Sequence record: MG752970.1
Strand: one strand, 5' to 3'
Length of the DNA: 64,000 nucleotides
Shown here: piece by piece, positions 5,120 to 62,226 of the stretch
How positions within the stretch are numbered: position 1 is the first letter of the stretch
Layout of the letters: each line of letters begins with the position of its first letter
The notes under the pieces: generated by a model
The model's database searches: none
Told to the model about the DNA's origin: nothing
Seen by the model: the letters and a program-made list of their open reading frames with translations, nothing else
Program-made: the position numbers and the translations under genes

Positions 5120-6403
5120 TTACTTATCGTCGCGGAATCTCACAAAGATAGGCCAACGTGCGGAGTATTCTCCCTTGGAAACAGAGATTTCACCTGCTTC
5201 AATTTCACAGGTAACATCGAGATAATCTTCTTGGTTTTTCCAAATAAGATCGCGCATGGCATCATCAAAACCAGATCCGCATTTTGCTTTGATGAAGGTT
5301 CCATTTTCATCATAACCTTCAAGGAAGACACCGCCAAGAGTATGCTCAAGACGGGTACCCTTGCGTCCTGGATAGAATCCAACAATCTTCAAATCCAAGG
5401 TGATGATGCCCTTCCATTTAGCCCACGAATTGGTTCGATCCCATTCGTAGAGAGCACCCAATTTCTTGACGATGATACCTTCACCAGGTTTCCCACCGAT
5501 CAATTCGCTACGAATCTTTTCAAAGAAGGCTTTGACTTCCGCATAATTATTGCAGTCAACACCTTCTGTTTTCATCAGCTTGTGATCGGGTTTCTCCTTC
5601 GTGAGTCGATCGATTACTGCCAAAACATCTTTAGTACGGTCTTCTTGAACGCGATCCCACTTCTTAGCTTCCCATGCATCGAGCGGCATCATGTCAAATA
5701 CATAGAGTCGCTGCTCAAGCTTTGCTTTAGCTCCTTTCGATTTGGATTTGGCATTCAATGCGCTCGTGAAATCCGTACCAAGAACTTCACAATCCAGAAT
5801 GAAAGGCTGGCCGATAATTTGCTCCAGCACGATGAGGTCTTCATCAAAGAGACCTTCAAGATGCGAATGTACCAAACCACTACGAGAGTAATGGATAACT
5901 TCGCCAGAGTTTACGATGGTGATGGAGCGAAGACCATCATGTTTGCGCTCGGCGCGACACGGGAATTCCCATTCGTAGTTGTCATCGACTTTTTCTGCCA
6001 ACATGACGTCAAAAGTCGGAATAGCATTTGGGTAAATCTTGTTGTAGGTGTCACCAGAGAAACCTGCTTTCGCATCCTTACCCAAAACTCGAGCCAGGAA
6101 AGAAGCAGTTTCTTCGGTATAAAGAGCAAGCGTTTGGGAGACAGCAGTCTTTGCTGCATTCCCGCGAAGCTCTTTGTTATGCAATTTGTCGAGAACAGCC
6201 AGCAGAGTTTCACCATTATCCACATCAACGTCTGCATGCTTCTCAATAGCATCCCATTTCCGCACGTGAAAGACACGATACGGGTTAAAAAGATTCCAGA
6301 AAAGCTTCTGCGCAACAGGACTCAAGTCCTTCAGAAGTTCCTGCTTAATGGCCTTCTTGTTGGTTTCTTCAACGGCCTTCAGAGTGGGAGCAAAATGTTT
6401 CAT
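5120..6403 (-). CDS. lig: ATP-dependent DNA ligase
   Basis: Motif I RKHDG, EGIIVK, WAKWK, OB domain GSGF, RWPIFVRFRDDK. Confidence 0.95.
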   Translation of the reverse strand: MKHFAPTLKAVEETNKKAIKQELLKDLSPVAQKLFWNLFNPYRVFHVRKWDAIEKHADVDVDNGETLLAVLDKLHNKELRGNAAKTAVSQTLALYTEETASFLARVLGKDAKAGFSGDTYNKIYPNAIPTFDVMLAEKVDDNYEWEFPCRAERKHDGLRSITIVNSGEVIHYSRSGLVHSHLEGLFDEDLIVLEQIIGQPFILDCEVLGTDFTSALNAKSKSKGAKAKLEQRLYVFDMMPLDAWEAKKWDRVQEDRTKDVLAVIDRLTKEKPDHKLMKTEGVDCNNYAEVKAFFEKIRSELIGGKPGEGIIVKKLGALYEWDRTNSWAKWKGIITLDLKIVGFYPGRKGTRLEHTLGGVFLEGYDENGTFIKAKCGSGFDDAMRDLIWKNQEDYLDVTCEIEAGEISVSKGEYSARWPIFVRFRDDK

Positions 6404-30371: not shown

Positions 30372-30579
30372 AATTTATCTAAAATTGTTCAAAAGTTTAA
30401 CTAAAGTAGATTCAACGTTGCATCGAATCATACTGTTATTTATACGAGACCATCAATCAAGTGCTAGATTGTTTGAACATTTTTCAACATGCTAGGTGCT
30501 GCTGACCGAATATGTATATCCAGAACGTCGAGCAACATCCAAGTATGATAGGATAAATATCAGAAGGAGAACGAACACC

Positions 30580-31296
30580 ATGAAGCTTCAAGAAATTATG
30601 AGAGATGGTCCTGAACTGTTCAAGCAGAAAATGCAGACCATTAGCAAAGTAGATGCAGCCATGACACAATGGATTTATGATCATGTCACATATATCGACG
30701 CATCTGATGGGAGCGATGTGGCGCGGGATAATGTTAGAGTCAAAGATGGGATTATATACTTTGAAAACGTGAAACCCACCGACTGGGGTTTCAATATCCA
30801 AAATCCAGAGAATACAAAGCATGTGCACATGACGATTGATATGAGAGGAGCCAAATTAGATCCGCCTCTTCCTATCATTCACAATGATTCTATCTTCGTT
30901 GACGATGATGTTTTGATAGTTAACTCCATCATTGATGACTGGTCAAAACTTCCAATTTTAGAAGAACATCAAAACTACGATGTTCAGTTTGCCGTCGTTG
31001 GAAATAAAACCATCATCAAGTCGTGGAATGGTTTGAGAAAATATGATCTACACCGTCTGCATTTCAATTGGGAATCAAATGAATCTGTAAAAATAGAATG
31101 CGGTCTTCTCGAGCTTGTGGATTTCCCAAAGCATGCATTTTTTAGTTATTCAGCATACTCCAACAATACAGATCCTCTAGCCCATCAACTTGACGCAGCA
31201 TTTGAGTTTCTTGCGCAATTAAGACGTGATGGTGGAGATGTCTTTGAATTCCAGGAATATCTAATAGATCATGGACTTGAGCAATTTGCTAGGTGA
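30580..31296 (+). CDS. FDxQDW-domain family protein, long form (dispersed copy)
   Basis: Probable start MKLQEI at 30580 (AGGAGA RBS, GATAAATA at 30552); C-terminal DVFEFQEYLIDHG. Confidence 0.75.
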   Translation: MKLQEIMRDGPELFKQKMQTISKVDAAMTQWIYDHVTYIDASDGSDVARDNVRVKDGIIYFENVKPTDWGFNIQNPENTKHVHMTIDMRGAKLDPPLPIIHNDSIFVDDDVLIVNSIIDDWSKLPILEEHQNYDVQFAVVGNKTIIKSWNGLRKYDLHRLHFNWESNESVKIECGLLELVDFPKHAFFSYSAYSNNTDPLAHQLDAAFEFLAQLRRDGGDVFEFQEYLIDHGLEQFAR

Positions 31297-47522: not shown

Positions 47523-48137
47523 TTAATTCAAGACCGTAATGTTGCGGTCAACAAACCATTCTTGGAGTTCAAACACCGAATCAAAATCAATTATCTTCGT
47601 TCCACCTAGTTCTATGATACGAATCTTCCCTGTATTTACGTCCTTGAATACTCGATAACCGGTTTTATCTTCATCGAAATTAATTCTGAATCTGTATTTG
47701 GTATCTAGCATTCGATACACATCGTCAACATGCAAACTGCAGTTTGACATGTAAATTTCGGTTTTATCTGATGGAAGCTCTTCCAAATAATCAATGAACT
47801 TAGGAATGTCAAGAATGCTTTTACGAATGTAAATTCCACCATTGATTTTCTTGGGTAACGATGAAAAATCCAAAATAGAAATCTGTCGTATACTAAGTTC
47901 AAAGCACTCAAGCACATCAAATGGAGCAGGTTTAAGCACATCGTACGCAATTCCAGAACCATATCTAATCACTCTTCCTGGAAAACCAATGGCATTATGA
48001 TCCTTAAGCTGCTTCTTAATGCTATCCCACTCCATATCCGTCACATCATTGTCTCTAAGATCCAGAATCTGTATGTTGTGAGCAATCCAGTCCAATTGTT
48101 CCTGCAATTTGTCGGTTGCAATTTCTAATAGCTTCAT
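47523..48137 (-). CDS. FDxQDW-domain family protein, long form (dispersed copy)
   Basis: MKLLEI; LRR-like ILDFSSLPKKI; SVFELQEWFVDR; TAAATA at 48158-48163. Confidence 0.75.
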   Translation of the reverse strand: MKLLEIATDKLQEQLDWIAHNIQILDLRDNDVTDMEWDSIKKQLKDHNAIGFPGRVIRYGSGIAYDVLKPAPFDVLECFELSIRQISILDFSSLPKKINGGIYIRKSILDIPKFIDYLEELPSDKTEIYMSNCSLHVDDVYRMLDTKYRFRINFDEDKTGYRVFKDVNTGKIRIIELGGTKIIDFDSVFELQEWFVDRNITVLN

Positions 48138-48665: not shown

Positions 48666-49052
48666 TTATAATCGTTTTTCAATAGCAGCTTCTAAGTCAT
48701 TATCAATAATATATTGCTGCAGATCGAAAACATTGTCATATACATAGACTGGTCGCACTCCTTTGTATATATAACCCACGCCAGCACTTCCATTTATGAA
48801 GATTTTTTCTTGATAGTAATTAAAACTGCATGTAATAGTAATATGGCGCGGCGCGATAGAGATCAAATCACACACAAAGTTTATATCTAATCCACTACAC
48901 CGCCTAAAAGTCACGATGAGAGATTTGCGGAGATTATTTTCAAGATACCATTTAACACTTTCTTGATGAACTCTCATATTCTCGGACCATATTAGGTCCT
49001 TTGGTATGCGGTGCAGCATTGCTAGTCGTTCAGTATCACTGTATTCTTTCAT
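48666..49052 (-). CDS. FDxQDW-domain family protein, intermediate form
   Basis: C-terminal NVFDLQQYIIDND. Confidence 0.65.
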   Translation of the reverse strand: MKEYSDTERLAMLHRIPKDLIWSENMRVHQESVKWYLENNLRKSLIVTFRRCSGLDINFVCDLISIAPRHITITCSFNYYQEKIFINGSAGVGYIYKGVRPVYVYDNVFDLQQYIIDNDLEAAIEKRL

Positions 49053-51337: not shown

Positions 51338-51363
51338 AAAAGGAGACCTTAAGGTCTCCTTTT
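51338..51363. terminator. Bidirectional terminator, perfect palindrome
   Basis: aaaaggagaccttaaggtctcctttt between convergent genes. Confidence 0.8.
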
Positions 51364-51944
51364 TATTGCTTAAATTTTGCTGGATCTTTATCGTATCCGT
51401 TTGATATCATAAAATCCTGGAATTCAAACACATCATCTAGCATAATTTCCGTAACACCCCACATGACATGAATTCCTGCTAGAGTTGCATTCACTATACA
51501 TTTCGTTCCAACGCTGTACACAAATCTGTCTAGATCCATTTGAAGCATTTTTTCAACATCATTGAATGACAGCATCGTGTGGTGGGTGTCTACAAAATTC
51601 ACATGATGTGATTCAACTAATGTTGACAGATCGGTGTCTAGTTCGCAGTTATATAGACTTAGATTCCCAATCGATTTGAAAATATTAAAAGAAGAAATTT
51701 TTCGGCGATGGATTGTGAGTCCATTAAGATCACTAAAAGTAATTGGTGAATCTAATAACTTAAGAGCATTCTTTGTCTGTCCTATGCCAACATGTATATT
51801 GGATGGCAATACCAATTCAGATGCAATCAGATACTTAGTCAGCTCAGCTCCTAGAACTGATTTCTGTTTTTCCAAATCCCAGGCACTTAGATTCTGTTCT
51901 ATCCAATCGACTAAAATATCTCTTTTAATTTCTGAAAGCTTCAT
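51363..51944 (-). CDS. FDxQDW-domain family, long form, array member 11
   Basis: MKLSEI; IGNLSLYNCEL; DVFEFQDFMISNG. Confidence 0.8.
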   Translation of the reverse strand: MKLSEIKRDILVDWIEQNLSAWDLEKQKSVLGAELTKYLIASELVLPSNIHVGIGQTKNALKLLDSPITFSDLNGLTIHRRKISSFNIFKSIGNLSLYNCELDTDLSTLVESHHVNFVDTHHTMLSFNDVEKMLQMDLDRFVYSVGTKCIVNATLAGIHVMWGVTEIMLDDVFEFQDFMISNGYDKDPAKFKQ

Positions 51945-51947
51945 TCA

Positions 51948-52556
51948 TTAGCCTCTCTTGAAGCAGTCCACACGATCGAACCACTCATTATCGATAAGCC
52001 ATTCTTGAAATTCAAACTCATCATTGAATTTTTCTTGCAAAGAATGACGGTATTCTTCATCAGGATACTCAGCAATTATAACATCACCTGATCTATTAAT
52101 GATTAGATCTACAGTAGAATACACCCATTGTCTAAGATTAGATCCTAGTAGCACGCCAAAATCTTCAAACGTTAGCAATGTGCTTTCAAATCTAACATCC
52201 CTACAAGCATGAATGGCCCATTGAACAAGTGCGCCATCATACGTGCAGTACAAAATTTCTGCTCTATCCTGAACAACCTTTGGCAGTTTACTAATACCTT
52301 CGGCAGTCAGATGAAATGAATTCAATCTCAGAATTGACACTGTATTCATGCCGATTGGTGGCGACCAAGTCGTAGGGTTATCAAAGCTTCCAGTAAAGTT
52401 AGCAGTCAATCCAGTAGCATCTAACACTGAATTCTTGATGCGTGAGATCCATTCTTGACCACCAGTCGCATCACTTGTTAAATACCCCAACTTTCTAAAC
52501 TCTGCGGCTATCTGTTGATCACTCATGCCTTCACTCAACCATTTCTTAAATCTCAT
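51948..52556 (-). CDS. FDxQDW-domain family, long form, array member 10
   Basis: MRFKKWLSE; ISKLPKV; EFEFQEWLIDNE. Confidence 0.8.
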   Translation of the reverse strand: MRFKKWLSEGMSDQQIAAEFRKLGYLTSDATGGQEWISRIKNSVLDATGLTANFTGSFDNPTTWSPPIGMNTVSILRLNSFHLTAEGISKLPKVVQDRAEILYCTYDGALVQWAIHACRDVRFESTLLTFEDFGVLLGSNLRQWVYSTVDLIINRSGDVIIAEYPDEEYRHSLQEKFNDEFEFQEWLIDNEWFDRVDCFKRG

Positions 52557-52602
52557 ATTACGCCTTAAAATTTACCAATCGCATTAGTAGTCCAATATTT
52601 TC

Positions 52603-53223
52603 TCATTCACTAATCTCAAAGTAAGTAGAATTATCCGACACACCGAGATTAATTAATTCATTCTGCAAATCAAACACGTCTAGACCAGACAGGTTATGTG
52701 TGTCATATTTTAATCTGAGTCCTTTCGACTCTGTATTTGATATCTCGAAATTCTTTCCTATAGAGTATATCACTTTAGTTCCTGAAGATATCAAATCTAT
52801 TAGATCATTCTCACGTATTTTGGTATCGCCAAGCAATATTTTCTTTCTACCCTTTAGGTAATCCAAATAAAGACCCGTTAATTTACAATCATAAATGAAC
52901 AATTCAATAGGATTTCCAAGCAGTGATATGTTGTTTATGGTGAAACCTCTTACGAAGACGGTCTCTATATCCGGTAGTGTGTTAGGAATATTAAAAGGAG
53001 TTCCCTTTCTTTTGGAATACAGCTCAAGATATGTAAGATCTTTTTGAGTTGTGCGTCCTGCCAGAACCTCATGCGCATTATAATTGCCGCCCAAATATGG
53101 ACCAAAACCCTTTCCTTCAAATCTATATCTCTTCAAGCTGTCAACAAAGTCAGCCCACTGGCGCATGATGTCATCATTCTTTATTTCACTCAACCTCATA
53201 TTATGCCTTGAAGAGTTTATCAT
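52603..53223 (-). CDS. FDxQDW-domain family, long form, array member 9
   Basis: Internal MRLSEI; IELFIYDCKL; DVFDLQNELINLG. Confidence 0.8.
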   Translation of the reverse strand: MINSSRHNMRLSEIKNDDIMRQWADFVDSLKRYRFEGKGFGPYLGGNYNAHEVLAGRTTQKDLTYLELYSKRKGTPFNIPNTLPDIETVFVRGFTINNISLLGNPIELFIYDCKLTGLYLDYLKGRKKILLGDTKIRENDLIDLISSGTKVIYSIGKNFEISNTESKGLRLKYDTHNLSGLDVFDLQNELINLGVSDNSTYFEISE

Positions 53224-53791
53224 GCAGATCTTTTTCGATCAAATAATTCTGAAATTCAAACACATCACTGGTTGTCCAGCCCGCAGGATTACTAGAACCT
53301 GTATCATGTACAAAATAATTTGACTCATCAAAACCAATCAGGATACCATTTACATTGTACATAAGATCTATCTGAGCTTCAAGCAGTTTGTCAAACTCAG
53401 CGAGACTTAGCTTTGAATCATGCAGCTCTACATACTTCACATTAGCTGTAACATAATCAGCAAACCCTGGTGCCACCTTGCACTTACCAATAACAAGCTC
53501 ATTTACTTTAGGCCAATCACCGTAGTTTCCTATTTCTGATCCACGAGTGACAGATAGTTGATTAAGCTTATCGAATTTGACAGGCCATTTTAGGAGTGAT
53601 ATGTTCTTCTTAGCATCAAGAATCCAGGTCTCAGTATCAACTGTGAGTTTACCAGCTTTCAGCATCTTGTGCGAAATAAAATTAATATGATCGATTTCAC
53701 CGGTGTCATCGGCTATCGCAAAGTTGGCAAACAACCAATCAATTAACGCATCATCTCTTTTTGCTGGAGATAGTATCTCATCTAGTTTCAT
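53201..53791 (-). CDS. FDxQDW-domain family, long form, array member 8
   Basis: MKLDEI; WPKVNELVIGKCKV; DVFEFQNYLIEKD. Confidence 0.8.
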   Translation of the reverse strand: MKLDEILSPAKRDDALIDWLFANFAIADDTGEIDHINFISHKMLKAGKLTVDTETWILDAKKNISLLKWPVKFDKLNQLSVTRGSEIGNYGDWPKVNELVIGKCKVAPGFADYVTANVKYVELHDSKLSLAEFDKLLEAQIDLMYNVNGILIGFDESNYFVHDTGSSNPAGWTTSDVFEFQNYLIEKDLHDKLFKA

Positions 53792-53800
53792 TTGATTCCC

Positions 53801-54403
53801 TTATTGAACGAAATAGCGTTCATCGTCTAACTGCATCTGCATAAGCGTGTCTTGCAAATCAAATACTGATTTAACCACTATGCGCTTAATAGAATTTGAT
53901 TTATTATCTCTTACTGATATTTCTAAAACATCGTACTTGTTGATGGTTAAATTAATTCCTCTATCACTGTCAGAGATAAAGTAACTAACTTCAAGCGGCC
54001 CAGATTCGATAATCAAGCACAAATCATTTAGTCTTATTTTAGAGTTTGACAGACGCAAGAGATCCTTGATATGAGACTTGGCATATTGTACTATTCCAGG
54101 TCCTAGGTTGCACAACAGAGCTCTAAACTCATCTACTATCGGCATCTTAGAATACTCATTCAATCTGCATGTCGTCATTTTCAGTGCAAAGAGCCTTGGT
54201 ATTCTACTAGGAAATTCAATAACCTCATCATGACCGTCCATGACTATTTGCGTTTCTGTTAATGAATATCCGGTATTCAGCCTACCGACAATTTCACCCG
54301 ATGTCAGATGGCCACCATAATGCTGATCGATTCCACTTACGTCATACTTATAAACGAATTCTTCCCATGCATTTTCGGTAGATCCTATCTCACGCAGCTT
54401 CAT
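53801..54403 (-). CDS. FDxQDW-domain family, long form, array member 7
   Basis: MKLREI; MPIVDEFRALLCNL; SVFDLQDTLMQM. Confidence 0.8.
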   Translation of the reverse strand: MKLREIGSTENAWEEFVYKYDVSGIDQHYGGHLTSGEIVGRLNTGYSLTETQIVMDGHDEVIEFPSRIPRLFALKMTTCRLNEYSKMPIVDEFRALLCNLGPGIVQYAKSHIKDLLRLSNSKIRLNDLCLIIESGPLEVSYFISDSDRGINLTINKYDVLEISVRDNKSNSIKRIVVKSVFDLQDTLMQMQLDDERYFVQ

Positions 54404-55044
54404 GGCTTGAATCCTTTACTTATTAGATCGTGTGACAGCAGATAGTCCTGTAGTTCGAAAGGATCATCAAACGCTATGTGAGTAACGTTATGAGGGTTTG
54501 TAGATTTCGATGAATCGATCGCGTTCGCGCTGTGTGATATTTTATATTTGTCGTTCACGTACATTACGGTTATAGAACCGGGACTGTAGTTAAATTCCTT
54601 TCCACTAGCAAGCATGAGCTCAAAATCTGCATATGATATCAGCGTGCCTCTGAGTACCCACTTACCAACATCCTTCGTTACCCATTCAGCAAACCCCTTG
54701 CGCACGTTGCAGTCTATTAACACCAGATGTTCTAGCTTAGGATAGTTCTGAAAGCCCTCTAGATAGCAATCCTCTAGCTGCATTCCAATTGCTTGTCCCA
54801 TCTTAACCGGAAAGGTAACAGTTCTGTTAGGAAAGTTTCTAGCATTCACTCGTATCGTCATGTGCTCTAGACCAACTAACTTTCCATTCCTGACTAAATG
54901 GCCGTAGTCTTTCTTCTGAATCGCCTGAGTTGTTCCTGAGTCTATGTTCGTAGATAGAACCAAATGATCTAACGTCCACTTTAGAAGTTCATAATCCTCC
55001 GAATCTTCTTTCAACCATTGCTTGAAGCTCATCTCTAATTCCAA
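54400..55044 (-). CDS. FDxQDW-domain family, long form, array member 6
   Basis: Internal MSFKQWLKE; YPKLEHLVLIDCNV; DPFELQDYLLSHD. Confidence 0.8.
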   Translation of the reverse strand: MELEMSFKQWLKEDSEDYELLKWTLDHLVLSTNIDSGTTQAIQKKDYGHLVRNGKLVGLEHMTIRVNARNFPNRTVTFPVKMGQAIGMQLEDCYLEGFQNYPKLEHLVLIDCNVRKGFAEWVTKDVGKWVLRGTLISYADFELMLASGKEFNYSPGSITVMYVNDKYKISHSANAIDSSKSTNPHNVTHIAFDDPFELQDYLLSHDLISKGFKP

Positions 55045-55056
55045 AAAGTTATTGTT

Positions 55057-55647
55057 CTATTTAAACCATTCGCTGGTATCCACGTTATCAATCAACCATT
55101 CCTGAGCATCAAACTCATCATCAAAGTACTGAATTCCATTATCATACGCTGATGGTCCCTGATATGAGACTCTACATTTATGTTTGATGTCGCTCACTAT
55201 TCTAAGCCAGTCGCCATCGATATTCACGTAGTAGGTAAAATCTATTACGGGCAGGAATGCTAATTCAATAACATCTCCAATTCGCAGCAATGAGTTAGTC
55301 ACACCAACCTGCTTCGCTATCTTATTCTTTATGTACTCAGCAAACCCATCTCCTAGGTTACACTTATCGACTGAAAAGATATCAGTAATAGGTAAATTAG
55401 TATAATCGTTAATCGTCAGTCGGTCCACATTCAGCTCATACAGGTATCTAATCCCATCCGGTAACCTCAACACCTCTCCGTTACCAGAAAAGGAAGCCGT
55501 ACAGTTACCAGTATTATCGTCAGCAGCCTCTTCTAGGAATTCATCTAAAGTGAGCTCCTTTGCATACGCACCGTTAGGCATCACGTATATAAATTCGGTG
55601 CGGATTCCATCAAATGCGTTTGACTTAGCAATCTCATTTAACTTCAT
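55057..55647 (-). CDS. FDxQDW-domain family, long form, array member 5
   Basis: MKLNEI; LPITDIFSVDKCNL; DEFDAQEWLIDN. Confidence 0.8.
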   Translation of the reverse strand: MKLNEIAKSNAFDGIRTEFIYVMPNGAYAKELTLDEFLEEAADDNTGNCTASFSGNGEVLRLPDGIRYLYELNVDRLTINDYTNLPITDIFSVDKCNLGDGFAEYIKNKIAKQVGVTNSLLRIGDVIELAFLPVIDFTYYVNIDGDWLRIVSDIKHKCRVSYQGPSAYDNGIQYFDDEFDAQEWLIDNVDTSEWFK

Positions 55648-56279
55648 TTGAAGTACTCCGATCCAGTAAAGCCGTTCTGGATCATCCAGTCCTGCATTTC
55701 AAAGACATCATCAAAGAACTGAAGTGCAGGAGCACCTCGGGCGTCAGCCAAGGGCGTCATCACCACGATCTTTGCGGTTTTAGAGTATCCCTTTTGCTGC
55801 ACCGCTTCACCCGCGGTAACTTTTAATATGGTGTTTCCTATATGATACTCTAGACTTCGAATGCCGCTTACGAGATGGTAGAAAATATCCTCCTTAATCT
55901 TCGTAGAATATGATCTTAAGGCTTGATCGCTACGAATGTTGTTCACAACCGAATCGGGTACCACGCAGTTCGTAAATTGATACCCATACACTGAATCAAA
56001 GGGGACGTCAGGAACTATGTAGTTAGCAACCGATAACCATCTTACTCTAGGTAGGGCGTACGGAAGTTCTAGCGGCGTCTGTGAATTAGGTTTACCATCT
56101 AAATGAACGGCAGCCTCTGACATTCTATCTTGATCGAGAAGCTTCAGCAAGCGTTCTCGTTGCTTGATGTATCCAGATCCAAAGTGCACCTGCGCGTTCT
56201 GCATCAACCAATCGCACAAGGCTTCATTATCCTGAGTTATTTCTTCTAGTTTCATAGCTGCGTAAAGAAGGTTTTCCAC
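55644..56279 (-). CDS. FDxQDW-domain family, long form, array member 4
   Basis: Internal MKLEEI; LPRVRWLSVANY; DVFEMQDWMIQNG. Confidence 0.8.
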   Translation of the reverse strand: MENLLYAAMKLEEITQDNEALCDWLMQNAQVHFGSGYIKQRERLLKLLDQDRMSEAAVHLDGKPNSQTPLELPYALPRVRWLSVANYIVPDVPFDSVYGYQFTNCVVPDSVVNNIRSDQALRSYSTKIKEDIFYHLVSGIRSLEYHIGNTILKVTAGEAVQQKGYSKTAKIVVMTPLADARGAPALQFFDDVFEMQDWMIQNGFTGSEYFK

Positions 56280-56839
56280 TTATCGGTTGACATCAAGTAA
56301 TCCTGTAGCTCAAATACGTCCGTGAGCTTGACATCAGGATTCTTTCCTTTAATCACATATTCATGACCGCTATACATCAGAAGTTCCTTTCCAGCTCTGA
56401 ACTCAAACATAACATCAGCATCTAGAATCTTCTCAAAGTCGTCCAGGTTTACGAGTGAATCTGAAACCGAAACCGTCGGTCTATTCTCCTGAACGTACTC
56501 TCCAAATCCCTTTGCAATGTAGCAGCGCTTCAGAAACAAGGCAGCAGTTTCAGGCCAGTTAGCATAGTTCTTGATAGTGACTTCCTTGAAATCGATGAAG
56601 CGTACCTCATAGATCTTTATTGGAAACTTAATCTCTATCTCGGTCTTCTTGTTCTCAATCCCACATTCTGTCAACCCGTAAATGACACCGTTTCCATGTA
56701 TCTTAGCTCGCAGTACGTCCTCAGTCATGGGCTGAATCATTCCCATATCGGTGAAACCAATCTTAAAGTTAGCAACCAGATCCTTGATCTCCTGCTCATA
56801 CTTATTCTGTATCTCTGTCAACCTCATGTACGACCTCAA
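56252..56839 (-). CDS. FDxQDW-domain family, long form, array member 3
   Basis: Internal MRLTEI; WPETAALFLKRCYI; DVFELQDYLMSTD. Confidence 0.8.
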   Translation of the reverse strand: MRSYMRLTEIQNKYEQEIKDLVANFKIGFTDMGMIQPMTEDVLRAKIHGNGVIYGLTECGIENKKTEIEIKFPIKIYEVRFIDFKEVTIKNYANWPETAALFLKRCYIAKGFGEYVQENRPTVSVSDSLVNLDDFEKILDADVMFEFRAGKELLMYSGHEYVIKGKNPDVKLTDVFELQDYLMSTDKWKTFFTQL

Positions 56840-56845
56840 ATAAAA

Positions 56846-57469
56846 TTACGCATCTAAAAATACCTCTGACGGCAGATTCAAACCTAGAATATATTCCTGC
56901 GCGTCGAAGATATCGGTAACCTGGGTTTGCTGAGAGGCTGCACCGTGCTGATTACGCCAAATTCGTATGTAACCGTCAGCCCCTTTCTTTACTTGAAATA
57001 TGATATCGTTCAACGTCCAGAAGTACTCAAGCATTCCCGTGTCAACCAACTCCAGAACCTCATGCATGCGCATAGGAACATTATTGAGTCTTGCAGAGTT
57101 AGAAACCTTGTTCTTAAGGTACTCGTATACAGCAGGACCGCAGTCACAGTTACGCATGATAAGGTCTTCAACGCTAGGCAGATACGAAAAATCCTGTATT
57201 CTGAATTTCTGCAGAGTAAGTTCCCTTAGGGTTGGAATAGGTACCGGCATGTCAAACAGTTCCTTACCAGCAGTATTTCCAACTAGGGTTAGATTCGTAT
57301 AGTCTAAATCACTCAAATTCTGAATTCGGCGCAGTATGAGCCTAATCTCATTCTCGTCCAGCGGGTCCTTACTTACTTGACCCTTCCTACAGTGATCCAT
57401 AAACCAGTCAAAAATCTCTTCACTCTCATCTTCTCTTATCTCCGTCAACCTCATTTTCCCATTCCCCAA
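56846..57469 (-). CDS. FDxQDW-domain family, long form, array member 2
   Basis: Internal MRLTEI; LRELTLQKFRIQDFSYLPSVEDLIMRNC; DIFDAQEYILGLN. Confidence 0.8.
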   Translation of the reverse strand: MGNGKMRLTEIREDESEEIFDWFMDHCRKGQVSKDPLDENEIRLILRRIQNLSDLDYTNLTLVGNTAGKELFDMPVPIPTLRELTLQKFRIQDFSYLPSVEDLIMRNCDCGPAVYEYLKNKVSNSARLNNVPMRMHEVLELVDTGMLEYFWTLNDIIFQVKKGADGYIRIWRNQHGAASQQTQVTDIFDAQEYILGLNLPSEVFLDA

Positions 57470-57511
57470 TTCGAATAAAACTTAAAACCTACCAGATCTT
57501 CCCGGATAAAA

Positions 57512-58072
57512 TCACTGAGAAAAGAACTTCTTCCAGTTGTCATCAGACATCAAGTACTCTTGAAAGTCAAACACATCCCGAAACACCGCACCTGTCTCCC
57601 AGCCATCAAACGTGACATCGTAGTCAGAACCCCAATACGTGAGCTGACAATCCCCTCGTTTAATCTCAAACTGCTTTCCGCTTCCCAGTATTACATCAAA
57701 CTCAGATAACGGTATCACGCACTCCTCGATCTCAACCTCATCGACCTTCTCTGATATGTACTTTCCCAACCCATTCTCAAACTTAGTATTAAACAGACGC
57801 AGTCTCTCAGCCTTCGGCCAATTGAAATAATCTAGAATTCTGCAGTTTGCTAATGAAACCACTCTAACTGAATCTACTGGAAAGTAAAACCTAGCAAGCT
57901 TACCATTACTTCCTAATGTACACTCATGTACATCGGTTAATACGCCATCTTTTATTCTAGAAGCTATATCTGCTAAACTTAATACACCTGCATTCCGAGT
58001 TACAGTAAACGTTTCTTTAAGCTTTTTAGCTAACTGTTTACTATTCTGACTCTTGATTTCTCTTACAAGCAT
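57512..58072 (-). CDS. FDxQDW-domain family, long form, array member 1
   Basis: MLVREI; VRVVSLANCRILDYFNWPKAERLRL; DVFDFQEYLMSDD. Confidence 0.8.
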   Translation of the reverse strand: MLVREIKSQNSKQLAKKLKETFTVTRNAGVLSLADIASRIKDGVLTDVHECTLGSNGKLARFYFPVDSVRVVSLANCRILDYFNWPKAERLRLFNTKFENGLGKYISEKVDEVEIEECVIPLSEFDVILGSGKQFEIKRGDCQLTYWGSDYDVTFDGWETGAVFRDVFDFQEYLMSDDNWKKFFSQ

Positions 58073-58354
58073 CCTAAACCTTTATCCTTACCGAATAAAA
58101 CATTTTCATCTTTTATTTACTGTATCTTATATACCAGAATCCCTAATACATAAGCCGCGAAGCGGCCCCTACACTCCCCGGATGTTTCTATAGCTCAGAA
58201 ACATTCCCGATGTATATAAGAACCTACAAACTCTGGTCTCGCGGTCTATGGTATCACACCGTCTCAGCGCTCAGGCGATTCAAAACGGTCCCAAGCGAAT
58301 TCTAGAATGTATAAAACCTAGGTAAAGGATGGAAAGGATTTCGAAAATGGGCGT

Positions 58355-58362
58355 TATTTATA
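58355..58362 (-). promoter_or_regulatory. T4-type late promoter TATAAATA
   Basis: Exact motif pointing into the long-form array; second TAAATA at 58114-58119. Confidence 0.6.
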
Positions 58363-58744
58363 GGGAGAAAAAGTGAGGGTTGGATAACGTTTGGAAAGCA
58401 TCGGAAAACCTTGGATATGAGCGCGTAAAAACGAAGGCCTCACACTCACACAGGATAACACTCGGCCGTCTACAAACCATCCCCCTAATGCACATCTGTT
58501 CCTGTATGTACGAGGCCACTAATCCCGGAGAGTTTCGCCCAGAAAACTAAGGGGTCTGGAGGCATTTTGTGTATCGTTTCGATGATTTCATACCTCTGCA
58601 GACTTACCTGAGGTACTCAGAGATGATTCGTTATGCTTGTTGATGTGCACAGTATCGAAATGTAGTAGATGATCTGAGCATCGTCTGTATGTTTCGAGTG
58701 TTCCATATAGTGCCGGAACACTTTGCACACTATTCCATAGATAC

Positions 58745-58774
58745 ATTATACACTACTGGTTTCGAAATGTACAC
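58745..58774 (-). promoter_or_regulatory. Sigma70-like promoter TGTACA-17-TATAAT
   Basis: Perfect -10, 17-nt spacer; no convincing ORF downstream. Confidence 0.6.
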
Positions 58775-59017
58775 TTTAGGCACATTCTTTTCGAACTATG
58801 ATACAGAATTTCAACAATTATCAAACCCATGGCATATTGTTTCACAGAATTCCTAGATCATAGTCAAATATTCTACAGAATTTCGAACTAGGATCCCCTG
58901 TTACACTTTAAATTTCTACTATGTACAAAAGTATGGTACAATATTAATAATGGAAAAGGGACGTCCCTCGCCGGGCCCCTCCTTCTGGGTTCTTCTGAAT
59001 GTTTGGTATAGACCCAG

Positions 59018-59203
59018 TCAATTTTTCTCTACGGGTTTGCACATCTCATCTACGATGAAAGCAAATTCTAGAGCTTCTCTGCTAGCTTTTTCGATCTTGA
59101 TGAGCTTGTTCTGCTGATACTTAGGTAGATCGTTGAAGCTCTTGCCTGTTTCCTTCTCATACAGACTTTCGGCAGCAGCTCGATCCTCAGGTAGATGGTT
59201 CAT
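59018..59203 (-). CDS. Hypothetical protein
   Basis: Last ORF of the mini-gene operon. Confidence 0.55.
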   Translation of the reverse strand: MNHLPEDRAAAESLYEKETGKSFNDLPKYQQNKLIKIEKASREALEFAFIVDEMCKPVEKN

Positions 59204-59204
59204 G

Positions 59205-59441
59205 TCAGTATGCGGAGAAGAAGTCGATCATCCATTCTTGAAAATCGAAGATGTCGTCCATGCAGACAGAGTATGTAACATATCTGTTAGGATGAACCTC
59301 GACATATTCATCGTGCAAAGTGATCTGAATTAGTCCGTTAATAAAGACCACAAAGCTGCTGGGAGCGACCACGTTCAGAGTCTTGGTTGTCAGAGCATGA
59401 CAATCAGTAACCACCTCCAAGATGTCAATGATCGTAATCAT
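59205..59441 (-). CDS. FDxQDW-domain family, stand-alone mini protein
   Basis: DIFDFQEWMIDFF. Confidence 0.75.
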   Translation of the reverse strand: MITIIDILEVVTDCHALTTKTLNVVAPSSFVVFINGLIQITLHDEYVEVHPNRYVTYSVCMDDIFDFQEWMIDFFSAY

Positions 59442-59485
59442 TTGAAGAAAAGTGAATGTGAGAACGGGCCTCCGGACAATTCTTC

Positions 59486-59701
59486 TTACTTCTTGATCGT
59501 GAACAGATGCAGTGTTTGCTCGAGATGTCGATGGGCGTAGTTCATACCACCGTATTCTCGAAGCGGTTCAGGTACATGACGATCGTAAATCTCTTTGAGA
59601 GCAATCTGTCGAAGACGTTCTTCCTCGGGTTTGTCGTTGGCTTCGATGGCGTCGAGGATCTTAGAAACCAGAGTGAGGAGGGTGGTGTTCTTTACAGGCA
59701 T
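59486..59701 (-). CDS. Hypothetical protein
   Basis: Short ORF. Confidence 0.55.
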   Translation of the reverse strand: MPVKNTTLLTLVSKILDAIEANDKPEEERLRQIALKEIYDRHVPEPLREYGGMNYAHRHLEQTLHLFTIKK

Positions 59702-59728
59702 GGGAGTTTTGGTATAGCGCCGGGTGAA

Positions 59729-59827
59729 TTACAGATGAACTGGAGATACGTACATGAGACCGAGAATCAGACCGATGTAGATCATGAAGACGATCGATGC
59801 ACCGATTGCAAAGTGAATGTCTTTCAT
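59729..59827 (-). CDS. 32-aa single-TM peptide
   Basis: Own translation MKDIHFAIGASIVFMIYIGLILGLMYVSPVHL; ATGA overlap with upstream gene. Confidence 0.55.
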   Translation of the reverse strand: MKDIHFAIGASIVFMIYIGLILGLMYVSPVHL

Positions 59828-60060
59828 TTTGTCAGATCCTCGATGAACTCGATCTCGGCGTTGATTCGTTCCAGCTCTTTGTCGTAGCCGAGACGAACAA
59901 ATTTCGAGTGAGCATCGTTTTGCGCGTACTCATCGATCAAAAATGCGGGATAGCTGGTTGTAGGATACGCTTTAGCCGCTTTCTCTACAAAGTGCTGGTA
60001 CATTTGATCGAGAAAACGCTTTCGACCTTTGAGGATCAGGAGCTCAGATGAGAGGGTCAT
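59824..60060 (-). CDS. Hypothetical protein
   Basis: Short ORF downstream of TATAAT at 60090-60095. Confidence 0.55.
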   Translation of the reverse strand: MTLSSELLILKGRKRFLDQMYQHFVEKAAKAYPTTSYPAFLIDEYAQNDAHSKFVRLGYDKELERINAEIEFIEDLTK

Positions 60061-60131
60061 GATTAGAATCCACTGGGTTTGTAGATTCTATTATACACTG
60101 GGTTCGAACTTATGGTTACGTTGTTACAATT

Positions 60132-60314
60132 TCAGTAGAGTTCCAGAGCTTCTTGACGAACGTCTTCCTTCTGGGTTTGACTGTTGATCTTATCAACAGC
60201 AACGTTTGCGTCTGCTTCAGTATCGAACTCGATGACTGAGGTATGGATCGAGCAGCCTGCACCGCTAGGGTAATCTGAATACACCATGCGAGTAGTAACT
60301 AGAATCTTGAACAT
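60132..60314 (-). CDS. Hypothetical protein
   Basis: AGGAG RBS; IEFDTEADANVA. Confidence 0.6.
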   Translation of the reverse strand: MFKILVTTRMVYSDYPSGAGCSIHTSVIEFDTEADANVAVDKINSQTQKEDVRQEALELY

Positions 60315-60324
60315 CTGGAAACTC

Positions 60325-60552
60325 CTATAGACGGTTGGTGATGATCCAATCTTGAAGATGAAAGATGGACTTTAGGCTGAAGACTTTGTGAACTCGTTGA
60401 TCAAACAGAAAAATTTCGTCATACACGAAGATTCGAATCTTTAGCAGCGGAAGATCGATTGTTCTCTGGCGAGTATCTACACAGGTGTCTTCTGTTGGTA
60501 CTAGATCTACCAGACATTCCAACACGTCAATGAGAGCCTGATGCGTAGACAT
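60325..60552 (-). CDS. FDxQDW-domain family, stand-alone mini protein
   Basis: SIFHLQDWIITNRL. Confidence 0.75.
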   Translation of the reverse strand: MSTHQALIDVLECLVDLVPTEDTCVDTRQRTIDLPLLKIRIFVYDEIFLFDQRVHKVFSLKSIFHLQDWIITNRL

Positions 60553-60553
60553 T

Positions 60554-60784
60554 TCAGCAGAAGGTCGTAACTATCCAGTCCTGCAGATCGAACAGAGATT
60601 CAAAGCGCAGTGGTATATTCGTTCCCAATAGTTGACCATGATACGTAGTAATAGAATGTCCCTGGTTGTACAGCGTAAATGTTGGAAGCTCTACGTTTAG
60701 GCAATCGAGACTTGGTACTTCATACACAACCGATTTAGGTAGAAGATCCCGTACGCAGTCTGCAATTTCTGTTAAGCTGAACAT
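60554..60784 (-). CDS. FDxQDW-domain family, stand-alone mini protein
   Basis: SLFDLQDWIVTTFC. Confidence 0.8.
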   Translation of the reverse strand: MFSLTEIADCVRDLLPKSVVYEVPSLDCLNVELPTFTLYNQGHSITTYHGQLLGTNIPLRFESLFDLQDWIVTTFC

Positions 60785-61012
60785 TTATAGTAAATTGGTT
60801 ACTATCCAGTCCTGCAGATCGAAGAGAGACCTGAAGAGCACTGGATTCATCAATGATTGTCCATGAAACAGTGAAATGTGATTGTCATAAATGTACAGAC
60901 TCAACGGCGGAACATCTACACCCACCTTGTCCAGATTCGGTATCTCGTATACGATAGATTTAGGTAGAAGATCTCGTATACAGTCTGCAACCTCTTTAAC
61001 GGTGATATTCAT
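60785..61012 (-). CDS. FDxQDW-domain family, stand-alone mini protein
   Basis: SLFDLQDWIVTNLL. Confidence 0.8.
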   Translation of the reverse strand: MNITVKEVADCIRDLLPKSIVYEIPNLDKVGVDVPPLSLYIYDNHISLFHGQSLMNPVLFRSLFDLQDWIVTNLL

Positions 61013-61238
61013 CGCAATGGCTTATTACCCAGTCTTGAAGATCGAATAGTGATGATAGCATTTCGTGTTTCTGTAATCCCATATCACGCCAGTAGACCTG
61101 CACATTGTCGGCGCAAATGTAGATAATTAGTTCTGGACAACCTACATCTACACGTCTTAGATTCTCGAACTCATAGATGGCAGCACGTGGAAACAAATCC
61201 TGCATGCATTGACCGAGTTCCTTCACCGTACAGATCAT
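60996..61238 (-). CDS. FDxQDW-domain family, stand-alone mini protein
   Basis: SLFDLQDWVISHC. Confidence 0.8.
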   Translation of the reverse strand: MICTVKELGQCMQDLFPRAAIYEFENLRRVDVGCPELIIYICADNVQVYWRDMGLQKHEMLSSLFDLQDWVISHCDEYHR

Positions 61239-61471
61239 AACAGATTAGTAACCACCCAGTCTTGGAAATCAAACAGGTCTGAGAACGTTCGTGGTTCTCG
61301 AAATGGGATTGTGTTGTAAACCGAAATCAAACCATTCATCAAGAAGATGGTGATCGGAATTCCCTTGATCCACTGAGTTGCTGGAAGTCCTAGCATCATC
61401 GGAGTAGCAGCATTCCTAAACTTGTCACCAACGATGCTGGCTAGAACGTCGTTAATTTCGTCTGCTGTCAT
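61235..61471 (-). CDS. FDxQDW-domain family, stand-alone mini protein
   Basis: DLFDFQDWVVTNLL. Confidence 0.8.
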   Translation of the reverse strand: MTADEINDVLASIVGDKFRNAATPMMLGLPATQWIKGIPITIFLMNGLISVYNTIPFREPRTFSDLFDFQDWVVTNLL

Positions 61472-61474
61472 TTG

Positions 61475-61708
61475 CTACACCATGTTAGCTATCACCCAGT
61501 CCTGAAAGTCGAAGATGTCGGTAAAGATTGTACAGTGTCCGCGGACGCCGGCGTCATACACTCGAATTTGATGATCAACAAAAACAGAGAATGGACCCTT
61601 TTCAAACCAAATGCTTTTCGTGACGTCATTACTACCTTCGCCTAGGTATACCTTGTTCTTATTTCCAAGGGCATCTTTTAAGATACTAATAACTTCTTCG
61701 GGGTTCAT
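61475..61708 (-). CDS. FDxQDW-domain family, stand-alone mini protein
   Basis: DIFDFQDWVIANMV. Confidence 0.8.
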   Translation of the reverse strand: MNPEEVISILKDALGNKNKVYLGEGSNDVTKSIWFEKGPFSVFVDHQIRVYDAGVRGHCTIFTDIFDFQDWVIANMV

Positions 61709-61998
61709 TTAGTCAGGTAGTGGCTCGAACCTACGCACACGATACAAACGAGAACGTTGAAGATGAGATTGTAGAACTGCATCTTCTTGATGTGATCCTT
61801 CAGCTTGTTAAACCGAGTACTGAACGCTCCACCATCCGAGAACACATCGTTGATCCTGTTCTCGATCTTACCAAGAACGCATAGATAGAAAACCTGTGCG
61901 ATCAAGAGAATCGCCGTCAGGATGAACGTATACATCTTCAGGTTTTCGATCGTGAAATGGTCGTACATGATTGTTAGGTCGGGTTTGTCAGGTATCAT
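61705..61998 (-). CDS. Two-TM membrane protein
   Basis: Two hydrophobic helices. Confidence 0.6.
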   Translation of the reverse strand: MIPDKPDLTIMYDHFTIENLKMYTFILTAILLIAQVFYLCVLGKIENRINDVFSDGGAFSTRFNKLKDHIKKMQFYNLIFNVLVCIVCVGSSHYLTK

Positions 61999-62104
61999 TG
62001 TAAGTTGTATACACTCCTAAGAACATCGCAGGAACCCGGCTATATCTATATAGCGCAGTCCAGAATGTAACGGAAACGAACACTCCGGAAAAAGTGTAAC
62101 AACC

Positions 62105-62226
62105 TAGACATTTTCCTGGAGTTAGGTTATAATCTTCTTAACGCAGGAAAACAAAAACCTGCAAGCAGTAAATCAGATTAACGGTTACACTTTCAGATTG
62201 TACAAAACCGGGAATCTTGATATAAT
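62105..62226 (+). promoter_or_regulatory. Tandem sigma70-like promoters
   Basis: TAGACA-17-TATAAT (62105-62133) and TTGTAC-17-TATAAT (62198-62226). Confidence 0.7.

Follow-up and report, generated by a model that had tools for sequence, protein, structure and literature searches.

Seven mini-genes in the genome of phage RsoM2USA

The stretch of DNA considered in this study (the window, 64,000 nucleotides [nt] long) corresponds to bases 124001-188000 of MG752970.1 (100% identity over the 5 kb compared), the genome of Ralstonia phage RsoM2USA, a lytic jumbo myovirus (343,806 bp) that infects Ralstonia solanacearum with a latent period of 270 min (PMC8504454). It harbors seven minus-strand genes for stand-alone proteins of 75-80 amino acids (aa), hereafter called minis, six of which lie back to back at 60325-61708 (the six-pack), whereas one lies apart at 59205 (Table 1). 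A preliminary description of this DNA had reported seven such proteins of ca. 75 aa in the same arrangement, and our calls of the open reading frames (ORFs) agree with it. It had also proposed that the minis match the C-terminal domain of longer proteins encoded by a tandem array in the same window. These longer proteins carry a short N-terminal leader and a short leucine-rich repeat (LRR) in front of the C-terminal module and will be referred to as long forms, a term that we use for any family member of at least 150 aa. GenBank labels every gene in and around the mini cluster as hypothetical protein.

The reading frames of all seven minis are unbroken, with neither stops nor frameshifts. Neighboring genes of the six-pack overlap by 4 or 17 nt or are separated by gaps of 0-3 nt. 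Most minis lack a clear ribosome-binding site upstream, and start/stop overlaps of this kind are typically seen in translationally coupled genes. Read as DNA, the six-pack forms a direct repeat of six copies with a period of 223-240 nt, and a copy at 59227 joins the same repeat family. Since this period leaves no space for an LRR between the copies, the minis are compact genes and not remnants of long genes of ca. 600 nt.

The minis are acidic proteins (isoelectric point, pI, 4.1-5.4), and all seven finish in an F-D/H-x-Q-D/E-W helix, in line with the shared FDxQDW terminal helix noted earlier. Four columns of their alignment are invariant; one, an Asp, falls in the first helix, and the other three (Phe, Gln, and Trp) fall in the terminal helix. 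An AlphaFold model of mini 4 (RsoM2USA_290), obtained with an input of 11 sequences, has a mean predicted local distance difference test score (pLDDT) of 93.7 and a predicted template modeling score (pTM) of 0.82. It consists of a helix (residues 5-15), four to five strands, and a second helix (residues 63-73), and thereby also bears out the N-terminal helix that the preliminary description had assigned to the minis.

A Foldseek search of the PDB with this model did not return a significant fold match (best E 0.8). An Sm/Hfq-like fold, suggested by the helix and five strands, was considered and rejected, as no such match was obtained. In BFVD the only significant matches were the minis of RsoM2USA itself (TM-scores 0.76-0.79), while small proteins of T4-like and other phages, e.g., Aeromonas phage phiAS5, are weak leads (E 0.05-0.35). 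Searches of Pfam and PHROGs with the minis gave chance-level matches only, 11 minis matched none of the NCBIfam and PADLOC defense-system families, and comparison of the mini profile with PDB sequences produced nothing below E 1. The minis had been said to lack the LRR; indeed, they are too short for it, no LRR was matched in Pfam or in the profile search of the PDB, and, as they have no Pfam match of any kind, no LRR domain is detected in them. The minis are thus covered by no curated family, solved fold, or paper found in these searches. They offer a compact, confidently predicted fold of ca. 75 residues for which no solved counterpart was found and which shows clear signs of selection (see below).

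Relationship between the minis and the long forms

For the last 33-40 residues the proposed match with the long-form C-terminal domain is statistically supported. A profile-profile comparison of the minis with an alignment of 11 long forms yielded 18 columns at an E of 1.6e-6, hhalign against 46 long forms aligned 33 columns (probability 95.8%, E 6.8e-9), and a hidden Markov model (HMM) of the long family matched all 17 minis of RsoM2USA and related phages, in most cases along the final 32-48 residues. It can be considered proven that a strand-strand-helix with Phe, Gln, and aromatic residues is common to minis and long forms.

Equivalence of the whole domain, i.e., helix, four strands, and helix, is not proven but is likely, on the basis of the predicted order of the secondary structure elements and a few longer pairwise alignments. 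In the AlphaFold model of the long form ORF274 (input of 11 sequences; mean pLDDT 91.9, pTM 0.87) the C-terminal domain is composed of a helix (residues 127-135), four strands (140-145, 149-154, 157-162, and 165-169), and a helix (172-181), so that the order of elements is the same in this domain and in the mini with its four to five strands. Pairwise BLAST alignments of minis with genes of a second long array reach 49-82 columns; residues 2-72 of ORF289 (mini 3) align to residues 111-192 of ORF309, and residues 19-75 of ORF293 (mini 7) to residues 148-195 of ORF313. The nearest long partners, ORF309, ORF313, and ORF320, sit in this second array outside the window and not in the array adjacent to the minis. 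The score of the N-terminal helix of the minis against the helix that opens the long-form C-terminal domain was not above background. A pattern of Ser/Thr, hydrophobic, x, acidic, hydrophobic fits both helices by eye, a likeness that is unproven.

To delimit the family, we scanned the whole genome with profiles of the minis and of the window's 11 long forms. This resulted in 62 members (54 long forms, one intermediate of 128 aa, and the seven minis), i.e., about 62 of the 486 annotated genes of RsoM2USA (ca. 13%, or about one in eight). A Phe, Asp/Glu/His/Lys, x, Gln motif occurs inside the last 36 residues of 59 of them, all seven minis included. Most of the long forms other than those of the first array belong to the second array set, and a few stand alone elsewhere. 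The middle of the long forms is a short LRR, since profile positions 35-114 match multi-repeat LRR_4/LRR_8 proteins among 1.84 billion representatives. LRR proteins were also matched in the PDB by the long-form profile (best E 2e-4) and, weakly, by the long-form model with Foldseek (best E 0.23). The genome paper (PMC8504454) does not discuss this leader-LRR-terminal-helix family and yielded no match to terms for paralogues, gene families, or duplication, and a full-text literature search revealed no paper describing the family. The family is lineage-specific, and the minis of RsoM2USA are domain-only paralogues within it. We regard the minis as domain-only members that branched off during the expansion of a paralogue family in a T4-type jumbo phage, in which this previously undescribed family accounts for about one gene in eight of 344 kb.

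Selection and turnover in related phages

Relatives of RsoM2USA are known only as metagenomic or Logan fragments, including one in sample SRR27675933. No relatives were encountered in INPHARED among phages other than RsoM2USA, nor were any found in IMG/VR and the JGI metagenomes. Fragments L002 and L003 (ERZ23578823) contain six minis, L015 (SRR33780678) contains four, and on the 180-kb contig L011 (DRR836200) a single mini is visible, at the edge, with 20 long forms after it. Each of the seven minis of the window has an orthologue in these relatives, with identities of 60-88% and ratios of nonsynonymous to synonymous substitution rates (dN/dS) of 0.21-0.48 (Table 1). Constraint is strongest over the last 17 codons (dN/dS 0.15 vs. 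0.44 elsewhere). The minis are intact and under purifying selection.

The set of minis varies at the same time. Their gene order in the relatives differs from that in the window. A second ORF285-like copy occurs in L002 (867-1103) in place of the 61-aa ORF, and an extra type of mini is inserted at different places in L003 (530-769) and L015 (2-232). Such extra paralogues in close relatives point to rapid gain and loss inside the mini cluster. Fragment L016 (ERZ23872309) possesses both long arrays, with at least 11 long forms in 12.7 kb, as well as a homologue of ORF294 and of the small neighboring genes. It has no six-pack at the syntenic place, no homologue of ORF285, and no recognizable mini; its ORF294 homologue (5979-6245) is directly followed by the homologue of the 60-aa ORF, without a six-pack in between. 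Orthologues under constraint combined with varying sets indicate that the minis are functional but dispensable and quickly turned over. Because their copy number changes between close relatives, they would be accessory rather than essential genes.

The leader of the long forms and its absence from the minis

A leader of Met, Lys/Arg, Leu, x, Glu, Ile/Val (the MKLxEI type) is present in 44 of the 54 long forms; six have a Phe-Lys-x-Phe/Trp-Leu-x-Glu leader and four have neither type. The long-form leader ends in L-x-E. For the minis, the reported lack of the MKLxEI leader was confirmed: scored with a profile of 38 long-form leaders against a background of 995 N-termini, they rank 14th to 731st, which is no better than background. 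RsoM2USA encodes a Peptidase_S77 protease of the T4 gp21 family (E 4.8e-24, 85.4 bits at a cut-off of 27) and a Gp23-type capsid protein (E 2e-97, 327 bits). In T4, gp21 cleaves after the Glu of L/I-x-E, and in IPIII the ten residues at the N-terminus are enough to direct a protein into the head (PMC9026906). Diverse proteins follow similar leaders in T4-related phages (PMC9026906, PMC3012670).

Ten gel bands of RsoM2USA virions have been identified by mass spectrometry, among them ORF89, ORF132, and ORF438 (PMC8504454); no mini and no long form of the MKLxEI type is among the ten. These three virion proteins (66030-66791, 87582-89606, and 309479-311161, respectively) have an N-terminus in common that reads Met, Lys/Leu, Thr, Phe, Lys, Gln, Phe/Tyr and that would be compatible with a capsid-targeting propeptide, given the gp21-family protease. 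Two genes of the window's long array bear the related type of leader. ORF89 is a weak, distant member of the family with the terminal motif; ORF88-90, ORF61, and ORF81 form a distant family branch with a variant terminal helix. Taken together, the L-x-E leader, the gp21-type protease, and the related leader on three virion proteins make it plausible that the long forms are packaged and that the leaderless minis are not. If the leader is indeed a capsid-targeting signal, RsoM2USA would possess an exceptionally rich set of binding proteins for delivery, and the minis would be the first hint of its modulation.

Possible roles of the minis

The preliminary description had taken the minis for decoys, competitors, or early-acting versions of the long forms. 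Its structural premise is right, as the minis are copies of the C-terminal module that have neither leader nor LRR; the proposed decoy or competitor role may or may not apply. The explanation that we favor, with low confidence, for the combination of leaderless minis and leader-bearing long forms takes the leader to be a T4-style capsid-targeting propeptide that is cut after its Glu by the gp21-type protease. In this scheme the long forms would be packed into the head and delivered along with the DNA, and each would expose an LRR surface of its own above the C-terminal base that all of them have. The minis, devoid of a leader, would stay in the infected cell, where they may use the module as a binding surface and occupy what it contacts in the long forms, whether this is a shared partner or the long forms as such. 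They would thus act as a microprotein-type competitor or modulator. We infer the mechanistic part of this explanation and consider the whole tentative, i.e., possible but on balance doubtful. A more specific version appears rather unlikely to us; it holds that the phage injects a capsid-loaded library of ca. 54 small LRR binders, stripped of a leader of five to nine residues by the gp21-type protease, and that the minis, as leaderless copies of the base common to these binders, stay in the producing cell to control loading or premature action. They would then be microprotein regulators, encoded by the phage, of the effectors that it injects.

Several results weigh against such a competitor or modulator role. 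When the mini model is compared with the long-form models in BFVD, the Foldseek match is weak (39 columns, root mean square deviation 1.9, E about 0.2), and the sequence of the N-terminal half of the minis is not significantly similar to the long forms at any point. The conserved Phe, Gln, and aromatic residues could be purely structural, packing the helix on the sheet, instead of forming a binding site. With no long form of the MKLxEI type among the ten virion bands (PMC8504454), packaging of the long forms is itself putative. Furthermore, L016 keeps both long arrays without a detectable mini, so that the minis are not an obligatory partner of the long forms.

We give equal weight, and hence the same doubt, to the possibility that the minis are independent small effectors, in which the module is only a scaffold and each mini addresses its own host target through variable strands and loops, in host takeover or counter-defense, with no functional link to the long forms. 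The rate of evolution in their variable N-terminal and middle parts, about three times that of the terminal helix (omega, i.e., dN/dS, 0.44 vs. 0.15), would agree with this, as would the turnover in gene content between close relatives, the acidic nature of the proteins (pI 4.1-5.4), their position amid small ORFs without assigned function, and the fact that L016 manages without minis. However, omega does not exceed 1, so there is no sign of diversifying selection, and the defense libraries and solved folds yielded no match. It would also leave unexplained why the most constrained part of the minis is the very motif that is common to about 55 other genes.

The minis could also be packaged themselves, as internal head proteins comparable to IPI* in size and layout and with a non-canonical targeting signal. 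The head of RsoM2USA is of the T4 type with a gp21-family protease, mature IPI* has 76 residues with beta sheets between N- and C-terminal helices (PMC3012670), an outline like that of the mini model, and most minis have a hydrophobic-x-Glu/Asp-hydrophobic sequence within their first 12 residues. This acidic-hydrophobic pattern, however, marks where the first helix begins, and by eye it would suit just as well the opening helix of the long-form C-terminal domain. In addition, the N-termini do not score above background with the leader profile, and no IPI* structure is among the PDB fold matches listed, all of which have an E of at least 0.8. We regard packaging of the minis as improbable. A function as assembly helpers or chaperones that fold, stabilize, or load the long forms seems improbable to a similar degree: it would suit the module common to both and the location of the minis, which precede the long array on its own strand, but no mini is recognizable in L016 beside its 11 or more long forms (12.7 kb), and mini copy number differs among close relatives. 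Least probable, in our opinion, is that the minis are functionless recombination by-products of the arrays, i.e., fragments that are open by chance. The region is one of tandem duplication and turnover, and most minis are without a clear ribosome-binding site, but all seven are intact and have orthologues at dN/dS 0.21-0.48, their length is uniform, their predicted fold is compact and confident, and their start/stop overlaps are of the kind typical of translational coupling.

Genomic surroundings and expression signals

The features of the window that bear on the family are compiled in Table 1. According to the preliminary description the minis lie among small early-type genes. Small ORFs do surround them, but that these are of an early type could not be established, as sigma-70-like sites were not above the level in shuffled sequence (15 found vs. 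10.0 +/- 3.7). Of the five unrelated small ORFs, those of 60, 78, 32, and 71 aa have homologues in L016, and those of 78 and 71 aa also in L002. The start of the unannotated 32-aa hydrophobic ORF (59729-59827, minus strand) overlaps the stop of the 78-aa ORF (59824-60060) in an ATGA, and a 32-aa ORF with the same overlap is kept in L016 (7201-7299).

The first long array lies downstream of the mini cluster on the same strand. The small-gene cluster is separated from it by an ORF-free spacer of ca. 945 nt (58073-59017, minus strand) with a mean column identity of 76% across three phages (window, L011:826-1826, and L016:7562-8518), compared with about 25-60% for the flanking proteins. Within it, a 7-bp hairpin is fully conserved, and there is also conservation of an extended -10-like box and of one T4 late-promoter octamer. 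The spacer has no Rfam match and no tRNA, and RNAalifold on the three sequences gave no covariation support for an RNA structure. The octamer is present in 17 copies in 344 kb, none of them near the structural genes examined; as it is not used genome-wide, the copy upstream of the long array does not allow conclusions on timing. A 10-nt box, AAAGTGTAAC, occurs around the mini cluster at 62091-62100 (plus strand), 62184-62193 (minus strand), and 58900-58909 (minus strand), and the first two of these copies point toward each other within the divergent region (62.1-62.2 kb). These are three of only five exact copies in the genome, which rules the box out as a general promoter element.

Table 1. 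Minis, other family members, and neighboring genes in and next to the window (positions are those of the window unless another sequence is named; orthologues are given with percent identity and dN/dS).
Feature	Position	Strand	Orthologue	Remarks
Divergent long-type member	30580..31296	+		From internal Met of ORF 30496-31296; leader and terminal motif
Isolated long form	47523..48137	-		204 aa; leader and terminal motif; HMM E 2.9e-14, full length
RsoM2USA_267, intermediate	48666..49052	-		128 aa; no leader, no LRR; C-terminal module present; long-family HMM positions 127-208 align to residues 31-122; mini HMM also matches
First long array, RsoM2USA_274-284	51363..58072	-		11 tandem genes, 186-214 aa; each with leader, short LRR, and C-terminal module
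Five unrelated small ORFs	within 59018..60314	-		60, 78, 32 (unannotated, hydrophobic), 71, and 61 aa; mini 1 inside this span; no Pfam match
Mini 1, RsoM2USA_285	59205..59441	-	L002:629-865; 85%; 0.23	78 aa; pI 4.1; apart from six-pack; long-family HMM matches residues 37-73
Mini 2, RsoM2USA_288	60325..60552	-	L015:682-909; 60%; 0.46	75 aa; transcribed last in six-pack; His for Asp in terminal motif
Mini 3, RsoM2USA_289	60554..60784	-	L015:453-680; 74%; 0.48	76 aa
Mini 4, RsoM2USA_290	60785..61012	-	L015:229-456; 88%; 0.21	75 aa; chosen for AlphaFold model
Mini 5, RsoM2USA_291	60996..61238	-	L003:766-993; 61%; 0.32	80 aa; 17-nt overlap with mini 4
Mini 6, RsoM2USA_292	61235..61471	-	L003:306-533; 68%; 0.30	78 aa; 4-nt overlap with mini 5
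Mini 7, RsoM2USA_293	61475..61708	-	L003:72-302; 74%; 0.46	77 aa; transcribed first in six-pack; long-family HMM alignment of orthologue over 68 residues
RsoM2USA_294	61705..61998	-		97-aa hydrophobic protein; first in the tightly coupled string that runs on through the six-pack; overlaps mini 7 by 4 nt; not a family member
Second, larger array set, ORF301-336	MG752970.1 188617-210056 (L004:617-22056)	both		Just outside window

Comparison with known systems

MicroProteins, which together with the internal-protein loci of T4 come closest to the minis as a concept, are single-domain paralogues that modulate multi-domain relatives by occupying the interaction domain of the latter, a notion that originates from eukaryotic transcription factors. 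The minis resemble them in being stand-alone copies of one conserved module of a family in the same genome, with the other domains gone. The module is not known to act in dimerization, and the minis are likened to microProteins by domain layout. Poxvirus ankyrin/PRANC proteins and F-box-LRR effectors such as Ralstonia GALA belong to large viral or bacterial paralogue families in which a repeat domain is followed by a short conserved docking helix at the terminus. The long forms likewise have a variable repeat domain and a short conserved terminal helix and are encoded in tandem arrays. The likeness concerns their architecture and applies to the long forms only; there is no Pfam F-box or PRANC match and no fold match.

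The internal head proteins of T4 (IPI, IPII, IPIII, and Alt) are comparable in other respects. RsoM2USA has a gp23-type capsid and a gp21-family protease, the conserved short leader of its long forms ends in the gp21 motif L-x-E (PMC9026906), diverse proteins stand behind this leader as in the IP loci of T-even phages (PMC3012670), and minis and mature IPI* are of roughly equal size. In contrast to the T4 proteins, the minis have no leader, and their searches brought up no sequence or fold similarity to IPI*, which is not among the 50 PDB matches listed, or to any other solved structure. The RsoM2USA family is also far larger, with about 62 members versus a handful, and its MKLxEI types are known here from their genes. 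With respect to family size, Bacillus phage G offers a parallel, since it carries about 35 copies of a zinc ribbon, a lineage-specific expansion in a jumbo phage (PMC7824862). The domain of RsoM2USA is a different one and comes in two size classes and with a leader, but here, too, one small domain has undergone massive tandem expansion in a single lineage of jumbo phages.

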